This document shows positions 25,571-31,814 of a stretch of DNA of 64,000 nucleotides, in pieces. A model generated the notes under the pieces. The model was given only the letters and a program-made list of their open reading frames with translations, had not been told where the DNA came from and ran no database searches. The first letter of the stretch is position 1. Every line of letters starts with the position of its first letter. The DNA lies in assembly GCA_023515725.1 (NCBI GenBank), contig JALDTO010000098.1, positions 1,700,164 through 1,764,163 of the forward strand. Reading direction: 5' to 3'. Origin of the DNA: Amoeboaphelidium protococcarum X5. Its lineage: Eukaryota; Fungi; Aphelidiomycota. The translations under genes and the position numbers were made by a program.

Positions 25571-28500
25571 TCAACTGATCATACTACTATTATTATTGCC
25601 AATGTTCTACTCTCCACCAACACCGCTTCCACCTTTGTCGGAGTTAATATCAGATACTACATCCAACGCCTTCAGGTACTGCTATCTAACTGGACTATCC
25701 GGCGCAAGAGCACCTAATTACCCATTATTCCATTTCAAAAATTGATTAATAGTCTCAGGACCACATTTCAACAGAATCTACTTCATCTTTATTGATGGTA
25801 CGCGAACTAAGAGACCAAAGCTGGACGGAGTTAATTGATTCAATAACCGCACCCAACCCTCCCACAAAGATTTGGCTCGCTTGTATTCGTCATTGTGAGG
25901 CTCAATATGCAAATTTTTGGCTTCAATCTTTGCACCGAGCCACAAAGTCTTGAAAGAGACGCATCGAGTCAGCACGTGGGTAAGAAGCTTATCCGATAGT
26001 TCATTAGGATAAAGACTTAGTGCAGTTAGAACAGCTTTCATAAACAAAAGAGGAACATTCGCCCCATATTTATCCAAAATAGCAGTTAATCCCCAGAATA
26101 CGACACTAGGAGTATAGAAGCGCTGCAATTAAGGATGAGTGAGAATGAGACGTGATATTTCAATCATGATTTTAAGACTGAGAAGATGTTATTATACAGA
26201 GTTCTTATCAGAAGATTCTATGTCGAAGCAATGGAATAGAACAAACACGTCAACAGGATGCAAAAACTGTTCCGAGACATCAGATAGCGGCTTGGATTGA
26301 GGCTCTGGATGCTTAAGCAGCACTCTTTCCACAGCATCAACAAATAAAGACACTCTAGTGGTGGTATCAATTTTCTACTAATCACTCCATAGAGAGGATG
26401 CCAATGAGAGCAAACCATGCCTGGATTCTTCAACTGAAATGTCGTCGCCGGGTAGAATACAGGCCCAAAATCTACCATCTTTGAATAGATTAGTCTTCTC
26501 AGACAGCAGCCGTTTGAAGAATGCCACATAGACAGATGAAGGCTTAACATGGACACCAGCAGAAGATATCACCATAGACTGCGCAAATTTCAGTACAAGT
26601 TCCATGTTTGAATCATTAAATTCCGACTCTATCACAGGTAGTAATGCAGAAGCTTTATTAGATCCATCGGGCATACCAATAAAGGAGACAATTTTACCAA
26701 CAGCCGCCAGAATTACATTCTACACCAAGCGATTCACATCATTATCAGACGCGGACAGCTTAGAAAACTAAGGGAATAAATGACGGAATATCGATGGATC
26801 TCTAACACAAATGACAACATAGAGGTCTAAATATCGCAGAATATCATTTTCAGTTATCTGTGCACCAACAATACCATCACCACCACCATCCTCATCAGTT
26901 ACGAGTTGATCAAATCCAAGAAGATTATCAAGATTCTCAATCGAGTACTCTTACACAGATTCAATGAGTTCAGCATATTTAGCCGTATGTATGGCAATAA
27001 GGTCCTTTTAATCACTATTCTGTTAAAATGCATCCGGGGACAGTGTCCATAATCGTCGAACAACTCGAATGGATTCGCTTCTCTTGGCTCGATATTCAGA
27101 CGATGTACACTCAAGCAGTAGATGGAAAGCCATTTAAGACACTTTAACATTATTAACTCTAAGCACACACTCAAATAGAAAATATAATGCAAATTATATT
27201 TTAAATTTCTCCAGAGGAGTTGGAGATTATGACTAAAACTTGAGCCTACTCAATTAACTAATCGAAAAAATCTATCCAACGTCTTGATCCAAATCTGAAC
27301 TATCCTTAGAATCTTTAGCATCAGTCATATCAATAAGAGACTAAGGAAACTTGACCAGCGCAAATACAAACTTTTTGAACACGACATTCTGCTTCTTTTG
27401 AGGAAGCCAAGGAGTGAACGCATTTCTATTACCGTCCATATTAATTCTGGAATACATCAACTACAGAAACTAATCAATCTAGGAGTCATACGTAACATGG
27501 TCCTATTTCATCAGGCAATGAAAGAAGAGACACGTAAAATAGCGAACAGCCAAATCCCATCTGTTCAGAAAATCATCTAGGAGAAATTTAAACCAGATAT
27601 CAGCCAAAAGATAGTCTCTCTGAGCATTGACTTGCTAAATCTCGCATTCAGACGCCTTTTAAAAGCTATGAAATCCTTCAACAGGCTTATTTCTATTTCT
27701 TCGCACCTAGTTAAATGTTCTAGGACTATACAACAAAGTGCAAATGTATCGCGCCAAAGCACCGCCCCAATAAGCTCTGCTACCACGAAACATTTATCCT
27801 ATTTAAGCTTTCTAAGGCTGTAGAATTTTTGCAGATAATACCGTCGCACCATTCTCTTCATGAGCATTATTTCGATTATCTAATAGCTTGGGTTATGCCG
27901 TACTACTCGCACTTGGATCATCATCAGGTACGAGGTTATTATCTTCCATTTATTCGTTTTGAATCTGATCAATATTTCTCTTTCTACCATTTAGCTTCTT
28001 CATATCAATCCCACTCATATAAAGCCATCTCGAGCCATACTCATCAAGGAACAAGGTATTGTCTTATTTACTCGCAATATCCATTTTATCAACAGAAGTA
28101 TTCTAATCGACTGCATCATCATAGTCTTCCTCCTACTACTCATCTTCATCGACATAATCAACATCGCCTCCGCTGCTATGCATTCCAAAAGGAGAAGCTT
28201 CCAGTACATGCCGCAGTAATTACTCAATAGCCTCAAGTAATCGGCGTCTAATATCAGCTGCTTTACCAACATCAACTTTGTCATTATCACTCTATAGGCA
28301 TGAATCTAAATCAAAATATGGTTAATGCTCTGAAGGCTGCAACTCGAATTAAACTTGACCCAGAGTAGATTATTATTCATAATCTTGGTCTGAATCATCT
28401 ATATCACGCTTCTATTCAACCATCATGCTATCATCAGGAATAACACCAGATTGTACATCTTTAGTTGATGGTTACGGTGGATTGAGTTCCACTTCCGCAG

Positions 28501-28801
28501 ATTGCCTAATACCAGCAATAACATCTTTCCACTATTATACTCCACCATCTTCATGACCAGATCCAAACGAGTATAAAGATGCCAAAATCGCTGAAGAGAG
28601 AATAGGAACACCAAGCACCTAAAAGTTCAAATTCGGCGGCATTTCAAAAGGACTCTATCTCTAGCCATACACAGGGACATTGGCACCCAAGAACGGATGG
28701 TTAGGATCAGACCTAAAATGTGAAAACCCATCTCTAACTATTTAAGTCACTTGTTCCACTGAGAGCTAATTTAATGCTTGCTCCTCCATCTTATTTTACA
28801 T
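25571..28801 (-). CDS. Symplekin-like mRNA 3'-processing scaffold (start uncertain)
   Basis: C-terminal symplekin domain PLLFMKAVL.AL.LYP...VLTR...K.LW...LWEGW......PSSF.LL..P. Long single frame to TGA 25571. Confidence 0.7.
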
Positions 28802-29217
28802 AATAACTCTCCAAAAATCTCGTAAATTGGTATAGAAAGACAGGTCCAATTTATCGTAAAGAAAGAACGAGAAAACTTTGAGAGAAAGTAACAGGCGCGC
28901 ACCATTGTAAGTACAGTAGAAGACGTTCCCACTGACTGTTGAATAGCGCTCACACTATCCGTTATAAATTGACTTCAATTATTATTGTTAATAATTTTAT
29001 GAATAAACAATTGTTGTAGTTTGAGTCTTCTCAATTTCTATGGTCTTCTCTAATGTGAAGTAAAACACGACAAGTTTTGCCTCACTGAGAATTGTCTAAA
29101 AATAGCCTCTTGAATGGATGTTACAACATCTTAATGATATTGCGTTGATTGAGTCTTTAATCTTTGAATTCACACCTTAAAATTAGTGAAAGAGAATATA
29201 AAGCATTCAAGCAAAAA

Positions 29218-29636
29218 ATGTGGAAAGCAGAGACAGGACATAACATTAAAGAGGTTAAAGCTTAAAAAAGCAACGATGATGATTGGGAGACTGATGGTGA
29301 AGTGGTAAGCAACTTTTCTTATGTTACAAAAAAATACCAATTTTTTATTCTTTAACCATGTGACTATATATGTGAGTGTAGAATGCTGTTAGTGAAAAGT
29401 AGCAGAGATGGGCGGGTGGTCGCGAGGTGCATGTTGATGTACCACTTAAGGAATTTGCTGCATAAGTGGCTCAGAAGCACACAGAGGGCAAGTTGAATGA
29501 GTATAGTGGAAATTCTTTTGCGCGCGGGTATGGTGGTAAGAATGGTGTTGAAGTGAGATCAAAAGATGATGCAGATGCCAAAATTAAAATAACATAGCAG
29601 TCTAACGCATCCAAGGCACCAGCACAGTAAAATTGA
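29218..29636 (+). CDS. Mini-cortactin (113 aa): N-terminal acidic Arp2/3-binding region plus start of one cortactin repeat; exons 29218-29304 and 29382-29636
   Basis: MWKAETGH...DDDWETDGEV|NAVSEKQQRW...FARGYGGKNGVE parallels the animal cortactin N-terminus (MWKA.AGH...[20 protein letters not shown]...SHGYGGKFGVE). GTAAGC..TGTAG intron of 77 nt keeps the frame. Absent from the ORF track. Confidence 0.85.
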
Positions 29637-29760
29637 ATTCTTTAATGAATGAATGAATGACTAATCAATCATGTTGTTTCTTCTATCGATTACATCATTG
29701 TGTAAGTTTCATTTCCTTATATAAGCGTCGAGTTAAACTTGTGAATTTAAATCGATGCAA

Positions 29761-29893
29761 GGTTGATTGTCAGTGAAGCTGTCATCGTCGGAATGATATT
29801 TGCCGAAGGAGCGCTATTTGGACCGATGATTTGGTCGAGACCACTCCGTAATCGGCGGTCAGTGAAATGACGTCACTTCATCCCTTGTCAACC
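29761..29893. other. Imperfect long inverted repeat / candidate structured ncRNA
   Basis: Seven nested complementary pairs around 29828: GGTTGA/TCAACC, TGAAG/CTTCA, GTCAT/ATGAC, TGAT/GTCA, GCCGA/TCGGC, GGAG/CTCC, GACC/GGTC. Confidence 0.4.
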
Positions 29894-29985
29894 GCAATTT
29901 CAACGCATTTTCTTTTGTCTCGATGTTAACTTTAAAGATATAAAGTAATCACTCTTACGACTTAGTTATTCTCAAGGATACTAAT

Positions 29986-31422
29986 ATGGATATTAGCAGG
30001 TAAATAGTTGAGACAATTGTAAAGCGCTTCATACGCGCGTACTTGCTTCACTCGGTGGCTTGGCTTGGTGGATTATTTGCTCATCTGATCTTCACTTGGA
30101 TTCCTAATAGAATTAGAAACGGTCCTAAAAGACCATCATGGACTCTGCTGCATGAACTCCTCATAGTATCTATGCAATACTCTTACTAATGGCATCTCCA
30201 GCATGCGACTGATGTTCCTCTTGATTACTAGTATGCGGTTCAACATCATAGTCTGGTTGATATGCAATTAGATGCTGTTACAGATTTTAAATCTGCCGTG
30301 CTAGAGAAATGTGGCGTCTCTGAGCGTGATTTGTATGCTTTATGCTGCGTGCGATACTTTAGGCTCCTCATTAGCTTACTGCCTCTTCTGCCTTATTATC
30401 CATTTGCTCGATTCGAGTCACGAACTATATCTTCCAAGACGGGAGATATTCGCGTAGACTTTGTTACGCATAGATCAGTCACCAATCCACAAAGCTATAT
30501 CGTGTATGTTCATGGTGGTGCGTTTACTTTCTCGATAGAAGCATCATGGCGACATATGGCTATGGAAATCAGTCGATTGACCAATTCTACTGTGGTGATT
30601 CCGCATTACCACCTGGCTCCAGAAGCAACTTTCCCTCAGGCTATCGATGATGTCATATCTACATTTTAGTACTTGCATACCTAGACTTAAGATGTTGATA
30701 GTTGCATATAGAACATCATTCTTATGGGTGACTCGGCTGGTGGTGGATTGTGCGTGTCGTCCTGTCTGGAGATGAAGAGAACTGGCGTCACGCTTCCTGC
30801 AGCTCTATACTTGTAAAGTCCATGGTTAGATCTGACGTGTGAAATAGCCAATATTGGCCTACTTGCTCATTCCGAGTTGGAAAATTATCTACAACTGGCT
30901 CGTGATGGACTACTCATGAAGGATGATTTAATCAAGTTCCCCAATGGATGGGCCAGACACGATGGTTAGGATATTCTTCATCTTCCTCAATGGCCCTTTG
31001 ATTTGTCTGAATGTTATGTCAGTGGTTTATAGCAGAATAATATTTCGCGCAGCTTAAATTAAATTCTAAAAACCAACAGTAAAGCTAGTCCCTTCTTTGC
31101 TAGTATTGAAAGCCTTTACGAAAGTCTTCCTCCCACTCTGATACAAGTTGGATAGAAAGAGTATCTGTGCGATGAGAGCATAGTGATGGCCACTAGATTG
31201 GCACGTAAACATGGTGAGAGGATGCGTGGTGGATTTACTTCTGAATGGCTTTAATTCTACCACTCTTAAAACAAAGAATTATAGGTGACTCGCGGTCCGA
31301 TCCAAGTACAGGTGTTTGAGCATATGACTCATGTATTTTAACTCTTCGCGTTTGCTGGTGTCAAAGAAGGTGCTGATGCTATCTCTGCTGGTTGTAAATT
31401 TATCAAATTATACTCACGCTGA
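29986..31422 (+). CDS. HSL-family alpha/beta hydrolase (esterase/lipase)
   Basis: HGGAF oxyanion motif, YHLAPE..FP, nucleophile GDSAGG, SPWLDL, catalytic His in MTHVFQ. Confidence 0.92.
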
Positions 31423-31814
31423 CTATGTAGTTATTCGAATGGATGTATACTGATTGAAACCTGTAAACACAATCGATCATTTCTCTTTCTGCTGATATGA
31501 CTAGTAATTAATTTTAAACACTTTTGAAACTAGTTTAAGCAAAGCTAAACGCTCCAAGAGACATTTACCTGCCGTTTCAATTCTTCATCTAGTTAAGATG
31601 TAGTAGTGTTATTTTTGTTTACAGAGCTGCTCTATCAATTTATCCCACTTACAAAGAAGCAACCGGAGATACTTTCGATTGTCTCTAAAAGCGGCGCCCG
31701 CGAGCTTGATTTTCTAGTGCCACGAAGCTCCTCATTATGCTTCGTATCGGCGTTTCAACTACAGTAGTTAACGCATAATTCTAGTCAGAAAAGAAAAATC
31801 GATGCTGCCGTGCA

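Follow-up and report, generated by a model that had tools for sequence, protein, structure and literature searches.

Amoeboaphelidium protococcarum X5 is a relative of fungi that parasitizes algae. On the forward strand of the 64,000-nucleotide stretch of its DNA analyzed here (hereafter the window, to which all coordinates refer), a two-exon gene occupies positions 29218-29636. Exon 1 (29218..29304, codons 1-29) opens with an ATG at 29218, the 77-nt phase-0 intron (29305..29381, GTAAG...TGTAG) interrupts a V|N site, as do introns of sea urchin cortactin and of a metagenomic gene (L004), and exon 2 (29382..29636) carries codons 30-113 and a TGA stop, with both exons being kept in a homeologous copy (L002). 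Translating the window with TAA and TAG as glutamine, five in-frame TAR codons of the gene are read as Gln and the product, here called mini-cortactin, comprises 113 residues. These coordinates and this translation, splice model included, exactly reproduce those proposed in an initial annotation of the window. Upstream lies a divergent open reading frame (25574-29206, reverse strand) that probably starts near 28801 or 28789, in which case it would share a head-to-head promoter of some 420 nt with mini-cortactin; a weak Rfam match to SNORD38 (29026-29090, reverse strand; 28 bits against a gathering threshold of 44, E 0.005) is probably due to chance. Downstream by 350 nt, an alpha/beta hydrolase gene of the hormone-sensitive-lipase type, with HGG and GDSAGG motifs, spans 29986-31422 on the forward strand. 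It is preceded by a non-coding segment (29830-29905) that is nearly identical in both homeologs, contains the palindrome TGACGTCA at 29868-29875 and has no match in Rfam; this segment may serve the hydrolase gene as a promoter element.

The initial annotation presented the gene as hidden, which proves incorrect because it has already been called in NCBI: the hypothetical protein KAI3640945.1 of A. protococcarum (P0005) is identical to the spliced 113-residue translation and has the same splice model, so that the gene was merely unnamed. When the 43-residue stop-free piece of exon 2 was compared with representative proteins, this 113-residue protein was the best match, and its cluster holds NCBI proteins from A. 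protococcarum (KAI3641878.1, KAI3652086.1, KAI3651006.1 and KAI3640945.1). Pfam gave no match to the exon pieces or to the whole deposited protein. The homeolog, located on contig C13, maintains both exons in frame, and of the codon changes that separate the exons of the two copies, 12 are synonymous and 2 non-synonymous (pS 0.168, pN 0.0075; pN/pS 0.044). Its intron measures 75 nt and contains indels, as do the flanks, and glutamine codons are swapped between the copies (TAA/CAA, CAG/TAG). The pN/pS ratio, the intron indels and the TAR/CAR swaps together support the genetic code, the intron and selection on the protein; judged by these substitutions, mini-cortactin is a real gene under purifying selection.

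The relationship of the product to cortactin is established by several searches, which took the exons as separate pieces and, for whole-protein comparisons, deposited proteins (P0001, P0005 and P0006). Cortactin provided the only matches in the PDB (8P94, residues 1-97, E 2.4e-8; 8TAH, E 1.5e-6). A hidden Markov model of the N-terminus, built from 13 animal cortactin/HS1 N-termini and one long environmental cortactin (P0004), ranked the two exons, scored separately, first and second among the 1598 six-frame segments of the window (E values of 2.6e-7 and 3.5e-6), with the next match at E 0.55. The whole deposited protein matched a model of long animal-type cortactins with E 2.2e-10 at Z=1e8, and the HS1/cortactin clusters retrieved from the ESM Atlas at 0.83 and 0.78 are taken as a lead only. 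On these profile and structure-database matches, the protein is a cortactin homologue corresponding to residues 1-97. The initial annotation is supported in recognizing the hallmarks of the cortactin N-terminus, devoid of repeat array and SH3 domain, in a fungal-side lineage.

The successive parts of the cortactin N-terminus, comprising the acidic domain with its DDW motif (NtA, cortactin 1-76) and the half repeat after it, can be followed along the protein, all of them on the forward strand. The N-terminal MWKA..GH motif (29218..29241) corresponds to cortactin residues 1-8; deletion of residues 1-17 in cortactin strongly reduces co-activation (PMC10613254). The inverted acidic motif D20-V29 (29275..29304), in which W23 stands for cortactin W22, is one residue shorter than its animal counterpart, with a W-to-RW spacing of 16 instead of 17, and both of its flanks are kept. 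It is followed by the VSEK.QRW motif (N30-W39, 29382..29411), in which E34, R38 and W39 are invariant across 36 aligned sequences. A 22-residue helix predicted by AlphaFold at residues 51-72 (29445..29510) is equivalent to cortactin NtA helix I55-T76, and residues G78-D91 (29526..29567) form half of an HS1/cortactin repeat that falls below Pfam detection, in which K82 aligns with cortactin K87, the F88 position is occupied by Asn and the second half of the repeat is absent. The C-terminal tail (92-113, 29568..29633) is non-conserved and of low confidence. The equivalences to mouse cortactin are W23=W22, V29=V29, E34, R38, W39, L51=I55, F54=L58, V58=V62 and H62=H66. Modeled as a single chain with 36 homologues supplied, the protein is predicted to be a disordered chain with one long helix, residues 51-72, at a local pLDDT of about 70-75 (58 for the whole model, pTM 0.22). 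In this prediction, the helix matches cortactin I55-T76 in length and hydrophobic register; its hydrophobic moment does not exceed that of its own shuffles (p 0.13), a test that animal helices also fail. The initial annotation missed this helix, through which activated Arp3 is read. Within the alignment, the aphelid sequence counts as one of the most divergent, with a long branch and a loop before the helix about 5 residues shorter.

The gene appears to be complete as it stands. Instead of the tandem 37-residue HS1 repeats of cortactins (3.5-6.5 copies; PF02218), it encodes one half repeat, and the helical domain, the proline-rich region and the C-terminal SH3 domain are absent. The stop codon (29634-29636) is kept in the homeolog, in which the 3' flank of the stop is also conserved. 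Within 1.5-kb flanks no further repeat or SH3 motif was found, and no TGTAG, the acceptor used by mini-cortactin, its homeolog and L004, occurs from 29382 to 31426. Flank motifs, acceptor scan and conserved stop all bear out the earlier observation that no repeat or SH3 sequence lies before 29986. Genome-wide, a profile of 36 sequences matched only the four exons of the two homeologs and detected no further cortactin repeats; searches of the genome with PF02218 and with the first 335 residues of a long cortactin are uninformative, since they recovered nothing, the known gene included. The SH3 domain of a long cortactin matched Abp1, an endophilin-like protein and myosin I. Mini-cortactin might nonetheless be the 5' fragment of a split gene, yielding a longer product by splicing to downstream repeat or SH3 exons or acting through a trans partnership with an Abp1-like protein, as could be argued from the presence in the genome of an Abp1 gene (L005) whose SH3 is the best match to that of cortactin, and from the spliced product being known from genomic DNA alone. 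We consider this very unlikely, given the conserved stop and 3' end, the start of an unrelated hydrolase gene 350 nt downstream with no intervening acceptor, a profile that returns just the two homeologs, and three fungal orthologues that stop likewise, with unrelated genes 43-253 nt downstream.

These orthologues belong to a wider set of deposited short forms of 87-119 residues, from Blastocladiella, Catenaria, Gonapodya, Rhodelphis, Palpitomonas, Roombia and metagenomic fungi-like contigs, some of which are automatically named cortactin or HS1 in databases and others unnamed. They surfaced only with a profile: in a word-index search the 43-residue piece yielded no candidate and the deposited 113-residue protein alone retrieved only itself. 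The profile search was restricted to short proteins (candidates of nominally 62-198 residues) and also returned many animal fragments. The complete-looking forms with a species name are those of Blastocladiella emersonii (KAI9176140.1, 119 aa, automatically named HS1), Catenaria anguillulae (ORZ34511.1, 102 aa, 5' partial), Gonapodya prolifera (KXS18391.1, 112 aa) and, from EukProt, Rhodelphis limneticus (98 aa), Palpitomonas bilix (99 aa) and Roombia truncata (93 aa, complete ORF). All three fungal genes reach a stop within 20-24 residues of the GYGG motif, with unrelated genes 43-253 nt on, and environmental genes L033, L034 and L035 likewise stop short after GYGG and are followed by unrelated genes; for L068, which runs out on a short contig, the 3' end is provisional. 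The metagenomic gene L004 is a second aphelid-like gene, with the same intron and 64% identity over exon 2, and it stops at the same point, after the half repeat. Mini-cortactin is hence not peculiar to this organism, short forms being deposited for Blastocladiomycota, Monoblepharidomycota, Rhodelphis and two cryptists, and it appears to belong to a family of short proteins found in early fungi and several non-opisthokont protists.

Further variants were observed among the environmental sequences. L033 and L034, both aphelid-like, lack the V|N intron and have in common an intron elsewhere, inside the helix (after AQ). A still shorter clade (L029:3541-3825, L031:973-1236 and L067:5001-5320) ends with SYG or shortly beyond it; L029 and L031 show synteny, with citrate synthase upstream and methyltransferase and adenylate kinase downstream, and the PRM1 and Zn cluster neighbors of the clade suggest a fungal lineage. 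A marine group (P0112, P0121, P0122 and P0124) consists of NtA-only proteins of 83-107 residues without GYGG, one of them from a Tiarina transcriptome of doubtful purity and origin. The P0072 cluster (ENA) contains one-repeat forms of 113-120 residues whose position is within the animal branch and which are possibly short animal isoforms or truncated assemblies. A scan of JGI metagenomes returned one locus, an animal-type multi-repeat form, and a Monosiga repeat protein (P0002) was discarded as a low-complexity false match.

We placed the aphelid sequence in a maximum-likelihood tree computed from an alignment with 36 rows and 109 columns, leaving out human-looking proteins retrieved by the profile search (P0025, P0047 and P0103); the tree is unrooted and the alignment short. 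A branch (94/95; present in 100% of bootstrap trees) separates animals and the long environmental forms from the rest, with every named short form on the other side. Four environmental genes cluster with the aphelid (99/98), and a one-residue deletion in the acidic motif is common to the aphelid and to the three of them whose first exon is aligned. Rhodelphis, Palpitomonas and Roombia group together (96/90), and the fungal-line sequences do not resolve as one clade. Because the alignment is short, the tree unrooted and the fungal line not one clade, this analysis excludes animal contamination but does not fix the order of events. A phase-0 intron at the same V|N site in the cortactin of the sea urchin Diadema antillarum, the one animal checked, favors common descent with animal CTTN, in agreement with a tree position not nested within animals. 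Horizontal transfer or contamination from an animal would account for the patchy distribution of the short forms, and the protist records do come from transcriptomes of predators, with the Tiarina record of doubtful origin. For the aphelid gene, such a source is already refuted, and the idea is most improbable overall: the gene uses the TAR=Gln code and the TGTAG acceptor of its host, sits on a megabase contig, has a homeolog and retains an intron at the animal position, and the named short forms are all outside the animal branch.

Whether the short architecture is original or derived is a separate question, and we see about even chances that a protein made of the NtA and half a repeat is the ancestral cortactin, predating the split between Amorphea and Diaphoretickes and retained in amoeboid, zoosporic and phagotrophic lineages. 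Under this account, taken as a whole and at the same even chances, holozoan cortactin would have arisen by tandem duplication of a 37-residue unit and gain of an Abp1-like half comprising the helical and SH3 domains. In its favor, short forms occur outside Amorphea, and animal proteins have n+0.5 repeats, as would be expected had a 37-residue unit been duplicated in an ancestor with 0.5 repeat. In the aphelid genome, a cortactin SH3 finds its best local match in Abp1, which fits, without proving, a later fusion with an Abp1-like C-terminal half. The gene in question (L005; G000:C207:385690-387666, reverse strand) is Abp1/drebrin-like: it combines an ADF-H domain with a charged helical region and a pair of SH3 domains, and the GSNYQRP segment that follows the ADF domain is similar to the beginning of the helical domain of cortactin.

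It is also possible, if less probable, that an opisthokont or older ancestor had a multi-repeat cortactin from which the short forms were secondarily reduced, with the same mechanism. Compared with one long sequence (P0004), fungal tails match different parts of the animal-type array: those of Blastocladiella and Catenaria score best against its terminal half repeat (86 and 81; others 51-65), whereas that of Gonapodya scores best against the first repeat and retains an interior ..AVGFD continuation. One fungal clade has been eroded further, to SYG, and the 113-120-residue P0072 forms fall inside the animal branch. Reduction would, however, require several parallel losses of array and SH3 alike, all non-animal members found are short (in a search range of nominally 62-198 residues), and the three members outside Amorphea (Rhodelphis, Palpitomonas and Roombia) form a group (96/90).

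The function that mini-cortactin might perform can be approached through published work on the mammalian protein. Residues D20-V29 of mammalian cortactin bind the basic pocket of Arp3 with a polarity opposite to that of WASP; both flanks of the acidic motif are required for co-activation and not for affinity, and Cort1-33 binds equally well yet without co-activation (PMC10613254). The NtA helix I55-T76 can be accommodated only by activated Arp3, where it holds the groove receiving the first actin of the daughter filament; repeat 1 links subunits 1 and 3 of that filament, and the NtA alone protects branches, less well than full-length cortactin (PMC11102864). With dimeric VCA, the NtA alone synergizes to the same plateau at an approximately 110-fold higher concentration (PMC3762189). 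Cort1-76 shows no F-actin binding and no Arp2/3 recruitment, and at high concentration it lowers activation by monomeric WCA. The aphelid genome encodes the corresponding partners: Arp2 (L042/L043), Arp3 (L045), WASP (L057) and Abp1 (L005). Its Arp3 keeps 9/10 of the basic pocket residues listed in PMC10613254, with Met at R230 and Lys at R329, and an identical W-loop, so that both the partner surface and a class I nucleation-promoting factor (NPF) are present; since this pocket serves WASP too, its conservation is necessary but not diagnostic. The WASP gene runs from WH1 to a WCA ending in DDDW, and an Ena/VASP-like gene (L059) was observed in the same genome.

By analogy with the mammalian structures, W23 and the acidic residues of mini-cortactin would dock in the basic pocket of Arp3, residues 30-50 would run over Arp3, helix 51-72 would occupy the groove that is open only in activated Arp3, and the half repeat would contact the first actin of the daughter filament, being unable to bridge to the third. 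The protein would thereby displace the CA segment of WASP/SCAR from Arp3, boost nucleation with WASP and slow debranching. Its effect would fall short of that of animal cortactin, as it would bind little F-actin by itself and would have no connection to SH3/Src signaling. Based on the published behavior of mammalian NtA and on the Arp3 pocket and W-loop, Arp2 and WASP in this genome, we regard it as probable that mini-cortactin acts as a weak, SH3-less class II factor, binding to activated Arp3 in place of WASP CA and thereby delaying the loss of branches. The explanation as a whole, which we likewise deem probable with this mechanism included, is that of a functional single-locus gene, present as two homeologous copies, encoding a natural minimal cortactin composed of the whole NtA and half a repeat. 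Features that speak against this explanation are the deletion in the acidic motif, the Asn at the F88 position, the shorter loop before the helix, the long branch, the hydrophobic moment of the helix, the low overall confidence of the structural model and the behavior of Cort1-76.

That behavior also makes a brake the main functional rival, since Cort1-76 inhibits at high concentration with monomeric WCA. Mini-cortactin could, like Arpin, occupy the acidic-motif site of Arp3 and, having no F-actin-binding array, dampen WASP-driven branching; the lack of repeats, the competition of Cort1-76 with WCA on Arp3, which lowers polymerization, and the use of the same Arp3 pocket by Arpin would all suit such a competitor. 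We think this unlikely, because conservation across the short forms extends to the N-terminal motif, VSEK.QRW and the helix, parts that serve co-activation and recognition of activated Arp3 and that simple competition does not need.

Regulation of branched actin in fungi is usually discussed through Abp1. The view of cortactin, a stabilizer of actin branches, as an animal or holozoan protein, on which the initial annotation relied, is indeed that of the literature: PMC3748353 restricts cortactin to holozoans with a sampling that included Spizellomyces and Allomyces, and PMC4824007 likewise dates it to Holozoa. Across literature that comprised few subscription papers, we found no description of a non-holozoan cortactin or of short forms. 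The Paraphelidium transcriptome paper and a preprint surveying chytrid actin make no mention of cortactin, the word was not found in the listed literature on Blastocladiomycota, Gonapodya, Catenaria, Rozella and Amoeboaphelidium, and cortactin and aphelids were not found together in one paper. Databases already carry the deposited gene and automatic names for a few short forms.

A conserved short form in aphelids, Blastocladiomycota and Monoblepharidomycota, and probably in Rhodelphis and cryptists, places the origin of cortactin earlier than Holozoa, and suggests that the core of cortactin is roughly the piece resolved on activated Arp3 in the cryo-EM structures of 2023-24. As evolution has kept the NtA in these proteins without the F-actin-recruiting array, they are suited to testing recruitment against displacement models of cortactin-WASP synergy, and they are a further candidate for the set of genes characteristic of non-animal cells that crawl and phagocytose. 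Should the ancestral reading be true, Arp2/3 regulation would have involved sensing of activated Arp3 at branch junctions from nearly the time of LECA, and this would have gone unnoticed because such genes have only about 100 codons and often escape Pfam.

Set against known systems, mini-cortactin has in common with cortactin (CTTN; 8P94, 8TAH) the N-terminal MWK motif, the inverted acidic DDW motif, VSEK.QRW, the 22-residue helix, the first half repeat with GYGG and an intron that separates V29 from N30. It differs in having 0.5 repeat in 113 residues, as opposed to 6.5 repeats in 546, an acidic motif one residue shorter and neither helical domain, proline-rich region nor SH3. Since two defining features of cortactin, array and SH3, are absent, we class it as a homologue that would act like the cortactin N-terminal domain, and not as cortactin proper. 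HS1/HCLS1 also has the NtA, with a reduced repeat number (3.5, PMC11102864), but is a vertebrate paralogue that retains the C-terminal SH3 half. Abp1/drebrin-like proteins, class II NPFs of fungi and animals, are branch stabilizers with acidic DDW motifs (PMC2190564; PMC10903444); they have an unrelated N-terminus (ADF-H) and are encoded by a separate gene (L005) in the aphelid genome. Arpin and the acidic tail of WASP use the same Arp3 pocket through a Trp and acidic residues, but their acidic motif is C-terminal and of opposite polarity, whereas the aphelid protein has it at the N-terminus, ahead of the segment and helix specific to cortactin; with its motif at the N-terminus and no Pfam WH2 match, identity as a class I NPF (WASP/SCAR) or as Arpin was rejected. 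The forms of Blastocladiella, Catenaria, Gonapodya, Rhodelphis, Palpitomonas and Roombia have the same architecture and size (93-119 aa) and are closer to animal NtA than the aphelid protein, with Pfam HS1_rep matching the three fungal ones. Engineered Cort1-76, 1-77 and 1-84 cover nearly the same span, bind Arp3, synergize with dimeric VCA and partly protect branches; compared with these fragments, the aphelid protein is the product of a natural gene under selection, with half a repeat in addition.
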